A DNA stretch of 64,000 nt, from the sequence record NC_019526.1; one strand, written 5' to 3'. The notes under the pieces are model-generated. The model searched no databases. It had not been told where the DNA came from and was given only the letters and a program-made list of their open reading frames with translations. Shown here piece by piece: positions 3,813-51,285 of the stretch; within the stretch, counting starts at the first letter, position 1; each line of letters opens with the position of its first letter. A program made the position numbers and the translations under genes.

Positions 3813-4108
3813 TCTATTATTAAATTCATACTTTTTCCTGTCCTTAATTCAATAGGTCGCTACGCTCAAATATTGATCTTCGTCACTCCGTTCCTCGATC
3901 AATATTAAAATCGGCAATTTGCGTTTTGTTCTCGATTCGCAAGCGAACCAATCACAAACCCGCAGCGAATTGCGAATCTCCCTTCGGTCAGTCAGTAACA
4001 CTGCTTTTTGGAGAAAGCAACTCTCGGAGTGATGAAAAACGAATTCCATTCGCCTCATGAAAAACCAACGAATAGTCGGTTCTGTTGAATTACTTGAATT
4101 ATAATTGT

Positions 4109-4415
4109 CTGTATTCACTTCTAAGGAGTTTTATACACTTCCTTAGTGGTTCTATGTCTTAAACAAGAAAACACATCAGAATGCAATACAGGAATTCTCG
4201 TAGCTATTATCAAAGCAGTTACTATCCATTGTAATATCTGCTCCATTAAAAGGACGCCCAATTCAGTACTGAAAAACTTTTGTGAGTAAGTCATTTCAAA
4301 CTGATTAATTTAAGGACACCCATTCAAATTAGCTGTATCCACTTCTAAGAAGTTTTATACAATTCCTTGGTGGTTTTATGTCTTAAACAAGAAAACGCAT
4401 CAGAATGCGATACAG
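4109..4415 (+). repeat. Two imperfect 83-nt direct repeats, each closed by a 7-bp stem (candidate structured RNA or ssDNA element)
   Basis: 4109-4191 and 4333-4415; CTGTATT...AATACAG versus CTGTATC...GATACAG. Confidence 0.9.
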
Positions 4416-4444
4416 AGCGTTTTATGTGGTGTTACAGAAATAAC

Positions 4445-4467
4445 AAAAGGAGCACAAGGCTCCCTTT
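4445..4467 (-). terminator. Probable terminator after the gp5-like gene
   Basis: AAAAGGAGC-ACAAG-GCTCC-CTTT hairpin just 3' of the stop at 4475. Confidence 0.55.
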
Positions 4468-4474
4468 GTTATTA

Positions 4475-7135
4475 TTACTGACATGCCTCAAGACGACGTG
4501 CCATAAACTCGGCACGTCTTGTTGTTTGACCATACCATGCAGAGTTGCGAATGTGTGCCGCCGCCAGGCGATAGTTTCCCTGTGCCATAGCACCAAGCAT
4601 ACCCGTAAATTGTTGTACGCCCCCTTTACCCATCTGGAATACCATCTCGACTAGTACAAGTTGAGCCATATATGGTGTTTTCATCTTATAAGATGCATAG
4701 ATAGAACTTGCATCGTTGATTGCCTTTGTACTATCACGAACCAACATTGCATCAGCTTGTTCTTCAGTAATACCTGAACTGAAGTTTTCACCACGTAATA
4801 CTAGGTGTCCATAACCAATAGTTGGGAATCCTCTACTATCAGTATAAGTCCAGAATTTATCATTTCTAAAGTACCCTTTTGCTTGTTGATATTGTTTAGT
4901 ACCTTCAAACTCTTTGAGTTCTGGCATTAATGTAGAATCACCTGGTTTGATTTGCCAATCCACCGCAGTTTTATCTACTGTACCAATATTCATTTCTTGT
5001 GGGGAGTAATTAACCACTGTACTGCTTTTTGATGTTCTTGGTCGTCTAACCGGAACATGACGAGACCCACGTTGTGCATAACCAGAACCAATTGTTTGTA
5101 TCTTGGTACTAACAACCAGTTCATTACTATCATTACCAGACACCACTACTGTGTTAGATGATGTTTCTTTGGTAGCTTTACCTTGTATTAGTGTTTTATT
5201 TGCACATTCTGAACCCGTACCAGTTTGGGTAGCATAGAATAGACCAGGATCTACTGTACCACTAAAACCATATAAATTGGCTGAATCGACGCGAATTTCA
5301 AATTTCAAAATACCACTTGCAGTACCAATTTCTTGTCCTTTTTGTACTACATCTTTACTATACAATGAAGTTTTCAAACCATAAAATACTGATTTATACC
5401 CAGAATTATGTACAATATACACTGCATTATTATATATACCAACTGTACCGGCATCAGGTGCAACTACAGTAGAATTACATTGTATTTCCCAGCCATTATG
5501 ATCTGTTGTACTTCCTTTATTGTCAGTTATATTTTTACCCCAATACCCGTACTGACGAATAATACCATTACATGGCATTAACATGTGAAGACCTTCATAT
5601 GTTTGGGAATAACCATTCATACCAGTATCAGTCATTAAATCTTGTGTCTGTACTTGAGATGTTTCTGGGGCGTATGAGATGAACTGTACGGCCTCCTGTT
5701 GTTGAGCCTGTACCAACTGTGGCTGGACGTCATTCGCAGGTTGTGGATGTACTGGTGCCGTAGTTGAACCACTTCCTGAACCATTGTAACCCGTATCTAC
5801 GGTACTACCATGATTTGATGCATCCTGCCAGTTTGAAATATTATGAATATGTTCATTAAGTCCAGCATTTGGTGTTTTAAAGTCCGGTGCCATAAATTCA
5901 GCAGTACCCTTATTACCTGAAGCATCAACTGTAAGATTCTGCCCACCACCACTGATATTAGTGGATGAATCACCGATGATGTTAGCAGTTGAACCTTTCA
6001 TGGAAACATTACTACCAGCAGTCACATCAGTACTACTACCGCTTTGTAAACGTAAAGAAGCAGCCGTCACCAATCGTAAATCTGCACCACTATTGATAAC
6101 TACTTGTCCTTCTATTTTAGAATCCAATGAACCAAGTAATTCAAGTTTAGTATTACCACTAATACGAGCATTAAGATCCTGTCCAGTTTCTATATTACAT
6201 GATCTACCAGCAACCATATTAATATCCTGACCAGCACGAATGTTAATATTTTTATCGCAGTGAATATTAATATCTCCATCACCGGTAAATGATATACGAG
6301 CAGTACCATCACGATTGATTAATAAAATATCACCAGTTGCCTCAGATAACATCAACTGAGCACCACTACGAGTACGCAAAACAATACCTTCATTGGTTCT
6401 TGCTCCCACCCTGGTATCATTCACTGGGTTGTTGAATTGTGTATCCTGATAAGTATCTGGATCATCATCCCATGAAGGAACATTAAGTTCATCATCGGTA
6501 TATCCATCATCTAGTACAAAACTATTACCCCTTGGTGTACTCATACCATATACTGTACTAATCATTTGTCTGGTACTACTTCTATTAGCTACACCAGCTT
6601 CTTTGTCGTATAAAAGGTTTTGTTTTTTTAAACCTTCAACGATAGGAACATTGACATATTTTTCATTTTGATCAGTACTGATGGTATTTCTGTCATAATC
6701 GGTAACTGGTAATGGAGAATCTGTACCACTATATTGTGATGTAGTGGAAGTTGCCATACCTGGAACCATTGTGTTCATTCGTTGTTCGTATATACAACCA
6801 ATCCAGTAAGCTTCATGTGATCTACCCTGAATGAATATAACAATTACTGGACAGCCTACATCGGGAGGTACCGCCCAGAATCCATAACCTTTTGGATACT
6901 GACCGTATGCATCAGCACTCGGTACACCTGGGGTTTTACCTGCAAATGGAGACATATAAGAACATTCAATCCATGATTTCTTATCGTCTCGTTCACTTTG
7001 TGAACCCTGAACCCATACTTTAATTTTACCACTCATAGTAGGATCTCGGTTGTCCATAACAATCGCTACCTGTGGATAAGCTGGGTCAAAACGACCCAAC
7101 TGTTCTTTTGCATACTGTTTACTTGTATCTACCAT
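4475..7135 (-). CDS. Baseplate central spike (gp5/VgrG-like): OB fold, beta-helix, degenerate M23-like domain, C-terminal lysozyme
   Basis: DNRDPTMSGKIKVWV...GFWAVPPDVGCPVIVIF (gp5 OB fold), beta-helix repeats, EHIH, C-terminal EFEG/TIGYGHL lysozyme. Confidence 0.9.
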   Translation of the reverse strand: MVDTSKQYAKEQLGRFDPAYPQVAIVMDNRDPTMSGKIKVWVQGSQSERDDKKSWIECSYMSPFAGKTPGVPSADAYGQYPKGYGFWAVPPDVGCPVIVIFIQGRSHEAYWIGCIYEQRMNTMVPGMATSTTSQYSGTDSPLPVTDYDRNTISTDQNEKYVNVPIVEGLKKQNLLYDKEAGVANRSSTRQMISTVYGMSTPRGNSFVLDDGYTDDELNVPSWDDDPDTYQDTQFNNPVNDTRVGARTNEGIVLRTRSGAQLMLSEATGDILLINRDGTARISFTGDGDINIHCDKNINIRAGQDINMVAGRSCNIETGQDLNARISGNTKLELLGSLDSKIEGQVVINSGADLRLVTAASLRLQSGSSTDVTAGSNVSMKGSTANIIGDSSTNISGGGQNLTVDASGNKGTAEFMAPDFKTPNAGLNEHIHNISNWQDASNHGSTVDTGYNGSGSGSTTAPVHPQPANDVQPQLVQAQQQEAVQFISYAPETSQVQTQDLMTDTGMNGYSQTYEGLHMLMPCNGIIRQYGYWGKNITDNKGSTTDHNGWEIQCNSTVVAPDAGTVGIYNNAVYIVHNSGYKSVFYGLKTSLYSKDVVQKGQEIGTASGILKFEIRVDSANLYGFSGTVDPGLFYATQTGTGSECANKTLIQGKATKETSSNTVVVSGNDSNELVVSTKIQTIGSGYAQRGSRHVPVRRPRTSKSSTVVNYSPQEMNIGTVDKTAVDWQIKPGDSTLMPELKEFEGTKQYQQAKGYFRNDKFWTYTDSRGFPTIGYGHLVLRGENFSSGITEEQADAMLVRDSTKAINDASSIYASYKMKTPYMAQLVLVEMVFQMGKGGVQQFTGMLGAMAQGNYRLAAAHIRNSAWYGQTTRRAEFMARRLEACQ

Positions 7136-16253: not shown

Positions 16254-16380
16254 GATATAATCTCTTATATTATATATCTAATAAATTTATTTACTTCAAT
16301 AAATACCTATGTAAATAATCTTTCTGTATAATGCATAATTCAATACATAATTTCTTGATACGTTAGATACGGAATAGCAA

Positions 16381-16412
16381 AATAGGTCAGTACTTTTCAG
16401 TACTGACCTATT
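16381..16412. terminator. Hairpin terminator downstream of the gp26-like gene and its extension
   Basis: AATAGGTCAGTACT-TTTC-AGTACTGACCTATT, 14-bp stem containing AGTACT in each arm. Confidence 0.8.
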
Positions 16413-16423
16413 TTTTTCTGATT

Positions 16424-16639
16424 TTATCGCCCCTCATTTTGTTTACGGACTTTCTTGTTGTATGCTTTAACCATCAAGTCTCGTTCAGTTACTGGCATAT
16501 TAAGTAACATTTCATACGAGGTATTATCAATATATACAGCAGCTTCCATTAATGCTTGTTTAATTTCTTGCTGATTAAACTCTATGTCTCGTATGTATTT
16601 TTCTATTTCAGTTGCCTCTAACTGGAGAAGCTGAGATCG
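16424..16639 (-). CDS. -1 frame extension of the gp26-like gene (gp51-like C-terminal segment), 71 codons
   Basis: Frame opens just upstream of the slippery T TTT TTC (16639-16645) and reads RSQLLQLEATEIEKYIRD...KQNEGR*; first ATG only at codon 31. Confidence 0.6.
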   Translation of the reverse strand, partial: RSQLLQLEATEIEKYIRDIEFNQQEIKQALMEAAVYIDNTSYEMLLNMPVTERDLMVKAYNKKVRKQNEGR

Positions 16640-17478
16640 AAAAAACGGGTAATATCATACACCAAATCTTCAATAACCCATTCATGATTACATTCACTAC
16701 ATTCAACCTGCATCGTGTGTTCAACACCAGTATTTTGCATTGTGTTGATTTCATCCTGAATAGTTTTAAGAACGTCTTTTGACTGATCTCCTACCCATTC
16801 TGAAATAAATTCTCGTTCAGTCACTTCATCCCCGTCTGGAGTGATAATTTTAGAGATACTATAAACAATACCGTCGAAGTTAATTTTAGTGATAGGTTCA
16901 AAAATATCAGAAATGAATAGTTTTGCTCGGTCTTCATCACTTAACGACTCATCTAAATCGAGATATTTGGATTTGGACTGAATATTGAACATTCGCTCAT
17001 TTATATCACATTGTTCTTTCCATGTAAGTGGTTTAAGTTCAATACTTAATCCATTATTTAAAACTACAGTAGGGATTTCTTTAATATATTTTACTGTATT
17101 CAATAGCACATTCAAATCACGTTCGATACGACCTTCATGGTCACATTCGGGACATTTTACATTAATATCATAAGTATATTCTTTGGTTGCAACTTTAATT
17201 GCAATAAGCAGTTGTTCGATATCATTGATGTATAATTCATCTGCATTAAGGACGTTCGGGCAGCAATTTTCAATAACTCGTGATACCGCATCCCCGGACA
17301 TAAGCATATCAGGAGTATTTAGTACTATTTCATCACGAGCACTGCGAGCACATACCCCAACTTTAATACCTTTATTTCCTAATACACCATCGGGATATTT
17401 AATTACATCATTTGAAATAAGTTTAGCACTAAGTACTTCAATTTTTGTGTACTTGGCTAGTGGGTTCATCTTACTCAT
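16618..17478 (-). CDS. Baseplate hub assembly / tail chaperone, T4 gp26-like
   Basis: MNPLAKY, RDEIVLNTPDMLMSGDA, CPECDH and CSECNH Zn motifs, terminal FF; start set at 17478 by GGAG RBS. Confidence 0.8.
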   Translation of the reverse strand: MSKMNPLAKYTKIEVLSAKLISNDVIKYPDGVLGNKGIKVGVCARSARDEIVLNTPDMLMSGDAVSRVIENCCPNVLNADELYINDIEQLLIAIKVATKEYTYDINVKCPECDHEGRIERDLNVLLNTVKYIKEIPTVVLNNGLSIELKPLTWKEQCDINERMFNIQSKSKYLDLDESLSDEDRAKLFISDIFEPITKINFDGIVYSISKIITPDGDEVTEREFISEWVGDQSKDVLKTIQDEINTMQNTGVEHTMQVECSECNHEWVIEDLVYDITRFFDLSFSS

Positions 17479-17548
17479 AAAGACTCCAATCAATGAACAA
17501 AATAAATAATCTATATGACATATTTATAAATGTTTAAAAGGATAAAAA

Positions 17549-19711
17549 ATGGCTGGTACAAGTACGGATTATCTATTACAACAATTGTTAACCAGTAATG
17601 AAAAAGCTAATGATAATTTATCTGCGATGAGAGATTTATTATCAGAAAATTTGAAAAAAAACGGTTCAAATAATAACAATAATAATAATCCAGGAAACGG
17701 AAATAATAGAAGAAAGAAAGAAAAGATATCATTAAATGATGCTTTAAAAAATATATCCAGAGATGTTAGTGGATTTAGTAGAACTCTCATTAACGGTAGT
17801 GCGGATGTTGGAACTGTTACGAATTCGCTTGGTACCGGAATGAGTAGTGTAATCGGTACATTAGGAAAGGCTGTTCCAGCTATTAGTGGTGTAACTACTG
17901 CATTCCAGTTACTAATTGAAGCAGGACTATCTGTTTATAATTATCTAAATCAACAACTGGAAATGTATAATAAAATCAATTCCAGTGGTGTTAGTTTATC
18001 AAATGGTATGAACTCTATTCGTGCTGGTAGTGCTAATGCGTTAATGAGTATGGACAAATTCGGTAATTCCGTAGTAAAACATGCTGGTGTTATTGCACAA
18101 TTAAATGGTATATACGGTGATGGTGTTAAGGAATATGGTGATTTGCTTGGAACATTACAATTAGCACAGGATAAAATAGGTATATATGGTGTATCACAGG
18201 AACAAATGGCTGACTTAACCGCGAGGAATATTAAATTCCAGAAACAATTTGGTGGTGCAGAATTAATTAGACAAACTAACCAGGAAAAAAGCACACAAGA
18301 ATTTATTAAAAATATGACAACTTTTAGTAAATCAATGGGTGAATCAGTTGATGCAATTTTAAAGAAAACTCAGGATTTTGATAATTCACTTGATGCTCGT
18401 GGTTTAGAAGCTGCATTGGAAAACTGGGCTGGATTAAGTAATAAAGCTGCTACATTAACTACTGATGCATTTATTCAAGCTGCTGCCGGTATGGGTGACG
18501 CAGGAAAATCTTTTTTTAAAATAATTTCATCACAAGCTGTCACTGGTGCATTACCTACTGAATATATGACTGGTACTATTGCAGAATTTGCCGAAGAAAA
18601 CAAAAAAATGTTTATGGGTGGTATTACTGATGCAAAGGAAATACGCTCAGCTAACATCAAATGGGTTAGAATGCATAAAGAACAGATTAAGCGTGACATG
18701 ATGAACCAGATACAACTTGGGAACATCGAAGCCGCTAACTTCAACAGAAGTCTTCTTGAACTGGAAGCTTCCTCTAATGACCCAAAAAATGGACCAAAAC
18801 AACGTTTGGAGGAATTAACTAACAGATTTAATAATTGGATTGGTAATACATTTATAAAACCATTTAATCTTTTAATGGATGCTGGGGTTACATGGTTATT
18901 AGATATTTCAGATCAAACAACATCATTTAACCAATTTGTAACTACCGTATTCAGTCAGGGAATCGACAAAATAATGAATATGGTAACTGGCTTTTTTAAG
19001 AACTTTCCAGTACTTAGTGATATAGGAAAAACTTTATTCGGTGATTCTTATAATACATTGGTTGATAATGTTGGTGGTTTTATTGGTAATTTAGTAAAAA
19101 TACCTATACAACTGATATCAGTTGTAACCGATATATGGAATGGTAATTTAGCTGGTGCAAGGGAAACTGTACAAAATGCAATTGCTTCATTTAAACAGAA
19201 TTTCTTGGGTATGTGGGAAGGTATAAAAGATATCAAATTCAGTTTCAGTGACGTTAAAGACCGCTTGGTTAATATTGTAGAAACACTAAAAAATAAATTA
19301 ATTAATGCATTTGACATTCTTAAATATGTTTTCGGTGTCAGTGATGAAATGCCAAAAACTGAAAATACAAAAACACCAAGTGCTGAAAAACCAAAAAATG
19401 AAAACATAAATACACCCAGTAACAGTAAACCGACTGTTAATGATAATAACAGAAAACAACCACAAGTTGATCAAAATGCTTCTAATTATACCCCACCAAC
19501 TCGTGTGGATGAAGCTCAAGATAATTACAAAAAATCTCCTGATGATGAAAAAGTTGATAATAATTTACAACCAGTAAATTACGATGAATCAATGGTTGAA
19601 TTATTAGGACGTGTAACATCTGCGTTAGAAAAAGCTAACGAATACAATGTACAGAATTCAAATTATCTTAGAACTATATCTGATAATACTCAAATACAAC
19701 GTAATAGTTAA
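17549..19711 (+). CDS. Tape-measure-like / tail-associated helical protein
   Basis: 720 aa, helical Gly/Ala/Ser-rich with periodic aromatic residues; next to gp26-like gene; late promoter ATAAATA at 17502-17508. Confidence 0.6.
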   Translation: MAGTSTDYLLQQLLTSNEKANDNLSAMRDLLSENLKKNGSNNNNNNNPGNGNNRRKKEKISLNDALKNISRDVSGFSRTLINGSADVGTVTNSLGTGMSSVIGTLGKAVPAISGVTTAFQLLIEAGLSVYNYLNQQLEMYNKINSSGVSLSNGMNSIRAGSANALMSMDKFGNSVVKHAGVIAQLNGIYGDGVKEYGDLLGTLQLAQDKIGIYGVSQEQMADLTARNIKFQKQFGGAELIRQTNQEKSTQEFIKNMTTFSKSMGESVDAILKKTQDFDNSLDARGLEAALENWAGLSNKAATLTTDAFIQAAAGMGDAGKSFFKIISSQAVTGALPTEYMTGTIAEFAEENKKMFMGGITDAKEIRSANIKWVRMHKEQIKRDMMNQIQLGNIEAANFNRSLLELEASSNDPKNGPKQRLEELTNRFNNWIGNTFIKPFNLLMDAGVTWLLDISDQTTSFNQFVTTVFSQGIDKIMNMVTGFFKNFPVLSDIGKTLFGDSYNTLVDNVGGFIGNLVKIPIQLISVVTDIWNGNLAGARETVQNAIASFKQNFLGMWEGIKDIKFSFSDVKDRLVNIVETLKNKLINAFDILKYVFGVSDEMPKTENTKTPSAEKPKNENINTPSNSKPTVNDNNRKQPQVDQNASNYTPPTRVDEAQDNYKKSPDDEKVDNNLQPVNYDESMVELLGRVTSALEKANEYNVQNSNYLRTISDNTQIQRNS

Positions 19712-50788: not shown

Positions 50789-51285
50789 TGAATATTTTAA
50801 CACCAGAAAATAACGCATTTGATATGGATTTGGTATCAGATTTAATTCCCGAAGAAATGTATTGCGTACTGGATTTAAGTCCGGGTGGTGATAGTGATTT
50901 TTATTTTCGTCATATTCTCAATACTATCACATTCAACAGCAATAGTGCTGATATTCAAATTGGTAATAAAGTACTACAAGTACCTCTAAACTGGCAAATT
51001 ATGTTAGGTGATGAAGATACTGGAATGGTAGAAATGTGTACTATTGAAAACATACTTAATATGAAAGAACCAAAAGCATATGTTTTCAATCCAATTCGTT
51101 CTATGTATCCACGTTTTGAACCAGTTAAAGTACTAAGAGCATTTACTCTACCTACTAAATGGCAAATTCCAATTGTACCAAAAAAGAATTTGCTATGTGT
51201 TCCATTACAACACGGTTCTAATCCACCTTGCGTATATTTCGCAGATGAAAATGAGAAAATTCAGGATTTACATTTGGGGCTATAA
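50785..51285 (+). CDS. Conserved hypothetical protein
   Basis: 166-aa coupled ORF. Confidence 0.75.
   Translation: MMNILTPENNAFDMDLVSDLIPEEMYCVLDLSPGGDSDFYFRHILNTITFNSNSADIQIGNKVLQVPLNWQIMLGDEDTGMVEMCTIENILNMKEPKAYVFNPIRSMYPRFEPVKVLRAFTLPTKWQIPIVPKKNLLCVPLQHGSNPPCVYFADENEKIQDLHLGL

Follow-up and report, generated by a model that had tools for sequence, protein, structure and literature searches.

The gp26-like gene of Klebsiella phage vB_KleM_RaK2 (NC_019526.1; genus Alcyoneusvirus), a jumbo myovirus with a genome of 346 kb, ends on a slippery heptamer where a programmed -1 frameshift is proposed to yield, from one gene, a short and a long hub-assembly chaperone, the counterparts of T4 gp26 and gp51. 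The probability of this account as a whole is put at about 0.8; the trans-frame protein has not been observed and is not mentioned in the virion mass-spectrometry papers. As judged from sequence comparison, the heptamer marks a site of -1 recoding that is conserved, though absent from annotations, within the T4-type gp26/gp51 chaperone family. No report of a frameshift in a gp26-like gene was found in the literature, and a slippage join is present in the annotation of none of the 12 GenBank records inspected. The analysis was performed on a window of 64,000 nucleotides, and the positions given below are those of this window unless a locus is named (window position equals NC_019526.1 position minus 62000).

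The gp26-like gene, its surroundings and the proposed shift site

The features of the region are collected in Table 1. The product of F403_gp448 matches the Pfam family T4_baseplate (PF12322) over residues 59-272 at 2e-20, with a score of 73.8 bits that lies above the cut-off of the family (gathering score, 24.5 bits), and phrog_150 'baseplate hub' at 1.6e-30. The protein displays a Cys4 ribbon (C109, C112, C260 and C263), and its FF pair at 279-280 occupies invariant columns of the alignment. The ribbon is also behind erroneous annotations in a number of relatives, among them 'Lead, cadmium, zinc and mercury transporting ATPase' and 'ribosomal protein S27E', which are found in the Yersinia phage fHe-Yen9-03/-04 records and in the JGI proteins P0153, P0161 and P0163.

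Table 1. Positions of the features discussed in the text
Feature	Position	Strand	Basis or remark
Slippery heptamer T TTT TTC (X XXY YYZ register), proposed -1 shift site	16639-16645	-	direct reading, conservation
-1 coding stretch, from the heptamer to the TAA stop (16426-16424)	16424-16645	-	71 codons beyond two Phe codons
0-frame gp26-like gene F403_gp448	16618-17478	-	286 aa, annotated 'baseplate hub subunit, gp26'
T4-late-type promoter motif TATAAATA, 5' of the gp26-like gene	17521-17528	-	read directly; function inferred
Shine-Dalgarno GGAG, 5 nt 5' of the ATG at 17478	17484-17487	-	read directly
Palindromic hairpin, 16 pairs, T/A runs on its flanks, terminator-like, directly after the -1 ORF stop	16379-16414	.	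direct reading
ORF088, 720-aa virion structural protein, likened to a tape measure in the RaK2 record	17549-19711	+	annotation

According to the annotation, a late sigma factor of the gp55 type is also encoded in the window. At the other end of the unit, 364 bases without annotation separate the stop of the gp26-like gene from the next gene, which encodes endonuclease VII. The palindrome located in this interval is perfect over its 16 pairs and could end transcription both ways; it marks the boundary between the late gp26-like transcript and the endonuclease VII gene of the same strand. The annotation of Klebsiella phage Muenster has a 39-aa ORF with an RBS antisense to the conserved -1 ORF (locus 2656-2775, about 16456-16575 of the window, plus strand). 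This call, which occupies the gap left without annotation, is probably spurious.

The neighbouring ORF088 is transcribed divergently and matches phrog_14121, a PHROGs family of virion structural proteins. Its homologue in phage CBB, CBB_251, is represented by 29 peptides in CBB virions, and CBB_250, the homologue of the RaK2 gp26-like protein, does not figure in the virion mass-spectrometry table (PMC5259590). The record of the PA5oct homologue of the gp26-like protein bears no ESI-MS/MS note either; both are absence of evidence only. A preliminary description of this region had mentioned an adjacent but divergent tape-measure-like gene. The position stands, but the tape-measure identity could not be confirmed: ORF088 has no match in Pfam or in the PDB, and BLASTP against T4-like gp29 gives no better than E = 0.013.

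Read on the minus strand, the 0 frame passes through CGT TTT TTC and, after six more codons, meets its TAG stop (16620-16618). The -1 frame is open from 16654, three codons before the heptamer, and the predicted products are a short protein of 286 aa and a long one of 351 aa (280 + 71). The in-register heptamer at the end of the gene, the 71-codon frame closing just before a terminator and the product sizes of 286 and about 351 aa had all been put forward in the preliminary description, and each of them is borne out by reading of the minus strand.

Slippery motifs as such are frequent in this AT-rich window, where 122 in-register XXXYYYZ heptamers are present in 48 long ORFs. Only two of these lead to a -1 frame of at least 60 codons: the shift site considered here and one at 51273-51285. 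The latter, TTTGGGG on the plus strand, was rejected as a recoding site, since it belongs to an ordinary overlap of two consecutive genes through TAATG (ATG of the second at 51285).

The -1 stretch of RaK2 matches phrog_18291 at 6.8e-31. This family of unknown function, made from the same ORF calls, is the only one found in PHROGs, where the distant -1 ORFs match nothing. No match to the -1 domain was obtained in NCBIfam or in Pfam (in a copy without PF28602), nor was any found for the isolated domain by Foldseek search of the BFVD structures. The AF2 model of the domain consists of three predicted helices (pLDDT 81).

Conservation of the heptamer and proposed mode of slippage

A TBLASTN search with the -1 translation retrieved 74 phage records. 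The diverged matches (53-63% identity) start at the Phe-Phe pair of the heptamer, within the annotated upstream gene. A set of 26 distinct loci was compared, representing 13 deep lineages with protein identities of 21-100%: the RaK2 genus, Asteriusvirus 121Q, Salmonella phage Munch, the Mimasvirus phages CBB, GAP32 and XbC2, Serratia phage BF, Yersinia phage fHe-Yen9, a Vibrio phage, Sinorhizobium phage Phosso, Agrobacterium phage Atu_ph07, Ralstonia phage RsoM2USA, Pseudomonas phage PA5oct, Stenotrophomonas phage RAS14 and several IMG/VR contigs. In RaK2-type phages, TBLASTN finds one gp26-like place per genome; the HMM check for a second PF12322 paralogue was limited to the 64-kb window. The gp26-like match of Escherichia phage CMSTMSU (MH494197.1, 292937-293757) is in two pieces, unlike that of all other relatives, which could be due to an indel or to an assembly error in the gene.

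The site and its conservation are direct observations. The heptamer is kept in register at every one of the 26 loci, as T TTT TTC in 24 and as T TTT TTT in the remaining two, and is followed throughout by a homologous -1 ORF of 72-84 codons. The 0-frame stop is always met 1-11 codons past the heptamer, with variable position and variable preceding residues, and the -1 frame opens only 0-12 codons ahead of it. The probability of encountering the wobble T and the TTT codon in all 13 lineages by synonymous choice is about 10^-8.4, computed as the product of the per-lineage probabilities given the amino acids and the codon usage of each gene. In the relatives, a canonical terminator (GC-rich hairpin and T run) is located after the -1 stop and not after the 0-frame stop.

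The proposed mechanism is the following. A late mRNA of the gp26-like gene, begun at the TATAAATA promoter and terminated at the hairpin (16379-16414), would be decoded in two ways. Most ribosomes would follow the 0 frame to its TAG; their 286-aa product, with its Cys4 ribbon, is a PF12322 member like T4 gp26 and gp51. A minority, with tRNA-Phe in the P and A sites, would slip back by one base on U UUU UUC (16645-16639) and read the 71 further codons, resulting in a 351-aa protein that has its first 280 residues in common with the short form and a helical C-terminal extension of its own. Both forms would work together as assembly chaperones of the baseplate hub and tail initiation, the short one corresponding to T4 gp26 and the long one to T4 gp51, in a ratio set by the frameshift, as in lambda with G/GT. 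That the slip is ribosomal, how efficient it is and the chaperone role are inferred only.

Stimulatory signals were sought on both sides of the heptamer. No conserved downstream RNA structure was detected by RNAalifold (13 sequences, 0 predicted pairs), the single-sequence fold of RaK2 downstream of the heptamer is unremarkable (z = -0.41), and no Shine-Dalgarno-like stimulator is seen upstream of the shift site. Stimulatory elements are common at -1 frameshift sites without being obligatory. The heptamer U_UU.U_UU.C is among those shown by experiment to be shift-prone in E. coli in the absence of a stimulator, and it is used by IS elements (PMC4066793). Because no stimulator was found, the efficiency of slippage is inferred to be probably low, as for lambda G/GT.

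Both products might also be made by transcriptional slippage, RNA polymerase adding a U within the T6 run (T7-T9 in some relatives), and the conserved feature is indeed a homopolymer run as well. Six T are short for productive slippage by bacterial RNA polymerase, and it is at six T that the run is held in 24 of the 26 loci; it reaches T9 in RsoM2USA (locus 2268-2276) and T7 in RAS14 (locus 2127-2133). U runs are under-represented in E. coli genes, partly on account of such slippage, but the heptamer also stands in the perfect register for tandem slippage, a motif whose ribosomal activity has been measured (PMC4066793). Sequence alone cannot separate the two processes. Because of the constancy of the run and of its ideal register, ribosomal slippage is nevertheless favoured over transcriptional slippage, which is considered unlikely in general and more plausible in RsoM2USA and RAS14 than in RaK2.

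Coding character of the -1 frame

The -1 codon directly after the heptamer specifies Arg in most lineages and varies synonymously between CGA, CGG, CGT and CGC, while the 0-frame residue that overlaps it varies (D, G, E, V or A). PA5oct, RsoM2USA and RAS14 have one extra residue ahead of this conserved Arg. Directly 3' of the heptamer, residue conservation is confined to the -1 frame. Pairwise divergence at the first, second and third positions of the -1 codons amounts to 0.35, 0.23 and 0.44 in codons 3-14, and to 0.36, 0.23 and 0.53 over the whole ORF. The order 3>1>2 is the signature predicted for coding sequence, and it is observed from the heptamer on, upstream of any candidate start.

These data bear on a second explanation, namely that the -1 ORF is a separate small gene of about 40-70 aa expressed by its own initiation or by termination-reinitiation, the heptamer being incidental to the conserved Phe-Phe pair. 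The public records favour this explanation, since all 12 GenBank entries inspected annotate separate genes or nothing and phrog_18291 is a family of such small ORF calls; ATGA or TAATG overlaps are moreover present at the 0-frame stop in 121Q, XbC2, Phosso and Atu_ph07. However, no start position is common to the relatives, in which the gene callers have set the start of the small ORF in five different places. Counted from the heptamer, the RaK2 -1 frame offers no ATG, GTG or TTG before codon 32 (ATG 16549), which has no Shine-Dalgarno-like sequence upstream; the first start of the RsoM2USA ORF comes only at codon 49, and the 75 codons of the PA5oct ORF include no ATG, GTG or TTG at all. The lack of initiation signals is a plain observation. 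Both the protein conservation and the codon-position pattern also reach back to the heptamer, past every candidate start, and the wobble T and the TTT codon are kept beyond codon usage. A separate gene is therefore regarded as very unlikely. With an ATG placed across their 0-frame stop, 121Q, XbC2, Phosso and Atu_ph07 may gain a free small protein by coupled re-initiation, which is not possible at the 0-frame stop of RaK2.

The homologues of the 0-frame protein retrieved from a collection of 5.8 billion clusters measure 276-298 aa in 67 cases out of 68, the last one being a 172-aa fragment, and none of the 68 is an in-frame fusion. A profile of the -1 domain compared to 1.84 billion representatives identified only ORF calls of 41-67 aa, again without fusion. 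Although homopolymers are the classic location of indel errors, a sequencing error or a recent frameshift mutation splitting a single 351-codon gene is hardly credible and is excluded by this absence of any unsplit version from the protein collections searched, the same split being found besides in 26 independently sequenced genomes and metagenome contigs, among them ten Alcyoneusvirus records identical over the 76-residue -1 translation that spans the shift site. The split appears to be a selected state, as expected if the short and long products are both needed.

The preliminary description had interpreted the region as a probable programmed -1 frameshift with in-frame ATGs only at codon 31 or later, had suggested examining the conservation of TTTTTTC and of the -1 ORF, and had accepted that homologues lacking the slippery site, or possessing a proper start and RBS for the downstream ORF, would refute it. 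The interpretation withstood the comparison: none of the 26 loci is without the site, no start or RBS is common to them, and the first RaK2 start is as late as announced. The programmed -1 frameshift is thus supported by the conservation and start-codon tests, in the absence of an observed trans-frame protein.

Comparison with insertion sequences, lambda and T4

The heptamer of RaK2 is the one used for the transposase frameshifts of the IS3 and IS1 families, where U_UU.U_UU.C was found experimentally to be shifty in E. coli (PMC4066793). The IS sites differ in being usually accompanied by a downstream pseudoknot or hairpin or by an upstream Shine-Dalgarno sequence, none of which was found in RaK2, and their proteins are unrelated to the gp26-like protein.

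Long-tailed phages have kept a -1 frameshift in their tail assembly chaperone genes (Xu, Hendrix and Duda 2004, reviewed in PMC5009743), and it is regarded as near-universal among them, T4 being the stated exception: the G-T frameshift is described as conserved 'except T4' (PMC5009743). The RaK2 gene resembles lambda G/GT in several respects. Both systems have a slippery heptamer close to the 3' terminus of a small assembly gene; the short product and the C-terminally extended one, predicted in the case of RaK2, have their N-terminal part in common; no strong stimulator is present and the gene is linked to that of a large tail or virion protein. The T4 relatives of the RaK2 protein are likewise assembly chaperones, and gp51 does not occur in the particle (PMC3004832); the CBB virion table has no entry for CBB_250, which, as noted above, is absence of evidence only. 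The differences concern first the protein itself, a PF12322 member with a Cys4 ribbon and hence of another family: its only Pfam match is T4_baseplate, NCBIfam gives nothing that would indicate a tail-assembly-chaperone family, and no PDB fold match exists for the family in a search with the model of the paralogue gp51. In addition, the RaK2 gene is divergent from the putative tape measure rather than upstream of it on the same strand, and its heptamer is T TTT TTC. The link to G/GT made in the preliminary description holds for the logic of the system and fails for the protein family; the RaK2 pair and lambda G/GT are analogous, not homologous.

A further comparison is with T4 itself. Both gp26 and gp51 appear in the list of hub assembly chaperones, and the particle does not contain gp51 (PMC3004832). 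Genes 26 and 51 of the Tequatrovirus record MG781191.1 lie next to each other in divergent orientation, and the product of each belongs to PF12322. The domain covers residues 1-206 of the 208 of gp26, that is to its end, but only residues 1-201 of the 250 of gp51. Gp26 of this record terminates four residues past a Phe-Phe pair encoded TTC TTT, and its gene has neither slippery site nor -1 ORF. Gp51 continues in frame, from the position equivalent to the RaK2 heptamer, into a helical tail of about 49 residues, and a second precomputed Pfam domain, PF28602, is reported for gp51 relatives. In Slopekvirus and Pseudotevenvirus, the genes of gp51 (247 aa) and gp26 (184-185 aa) are found in tandem in the order 48-54-51-26-25 (Klebsiella phage KLB1 and Cronobacter phage D6b, extracted loci 1501-2795 and 1501-2794; further locus 3839-5268). 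Tandem neighbours in these genera versus divergent ones in Tequatrovirus fit an origin of the pair by local duplication.

The gp51 tail and the -1 domain open alike, with an aromatic residue, a basic residue and Leu-Leu followed by Pro-acidic-acidic-Ile/Val, and close alike, with a hydrophobic pair, Met/Pro and Glu-Arg followed by an amphipathic helix. Comparison of the two by hhalign gives P = 1.6e-3, 4e-4 and 1e-4, the last with two divergent gp51 added and at 58% probability, the range over the comparisons being 16-58%. In the hhalign register the helices predicted by AF2 coincide (gp51 226-230 and 234-249, pLDDT 92; -1 domain 47-51 and 57-74, pLDDT 81). A pair of motifs defined post hoc was matched, among 1677 six-frame ORFs, only by gp51 and the -1 ORFs. 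The signal comes from profile-profile comparison only, since an HMM of the gp51 tail is not significant against the six-frame ORFs (E 0.6-5); the gp51 AF2 model (pLDDT 92) has no Foldseek match in the PDB at E below 0.1, and a profile search of the PDB sequences found nothing. The likeness, which depends on profiles and predicted models, thus has moderate support. The description of the region as a gp26-like segment joined to a gp51-like one was consequently apt, in so far as gp26 ends at the equivalent FF and the gp51 tail resembles the -1 domain, but its second half is only moderately supported. Equivalence of the RaK2 short and long forms to T4 gp26 and gp51 is likewise inferred; it is probable but not shown.

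If the account is true, a frameshift is present in the hub chaperone gene of the T4 family throughout a large clade of jumbo myoviruses infecting Klebsiella, Escherichia, Salmonella, Erwinia, Pectobacterium, Yersinia, Vibrio, Agrobacterium, Sinorhizobium, Ralstonia, Pseudomonas and Stenotrophomonas. Corrected annotation would follow for at least 74 genomes, in which a 'hypothetical protein' or a gap becomes the C-terminal domain of a second chaperone isoform, and the poorly understood roles of T4 gp26 and gp51 would receive a concrete hypothesis.

RaK2 and T4 have in common that the 0-frame product and the T4 proteins are PF12322 members with Cys motifs and a C-terminal aromatic pair at equivalent positions, and that gp26 ends, and the gp51 tail starts, where the RaK2 heptamer is located. 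They differ in that the T4-like phages use two genes without slippery site, whereas RaK2-type phages have one gene, as found by TBLASTN, with the heptamer. It is tempting, at somewhat less than even odds, to see here two solutions for the provision of a short and a tail-bearing assembly chaperone of the hub and tape measure. Gp26/gp51 would then be the T4-lineage counterpart of G/GT on an unrelated fold, and T4 would owe its long-noted lack of a tail-gene frameshift to a gene duplication that replaced recoding, or the reverse. A fixed ratio of short to long chaperone may be a general need of tail initiation, one lineage meeting it through recoding and another through paralogy.
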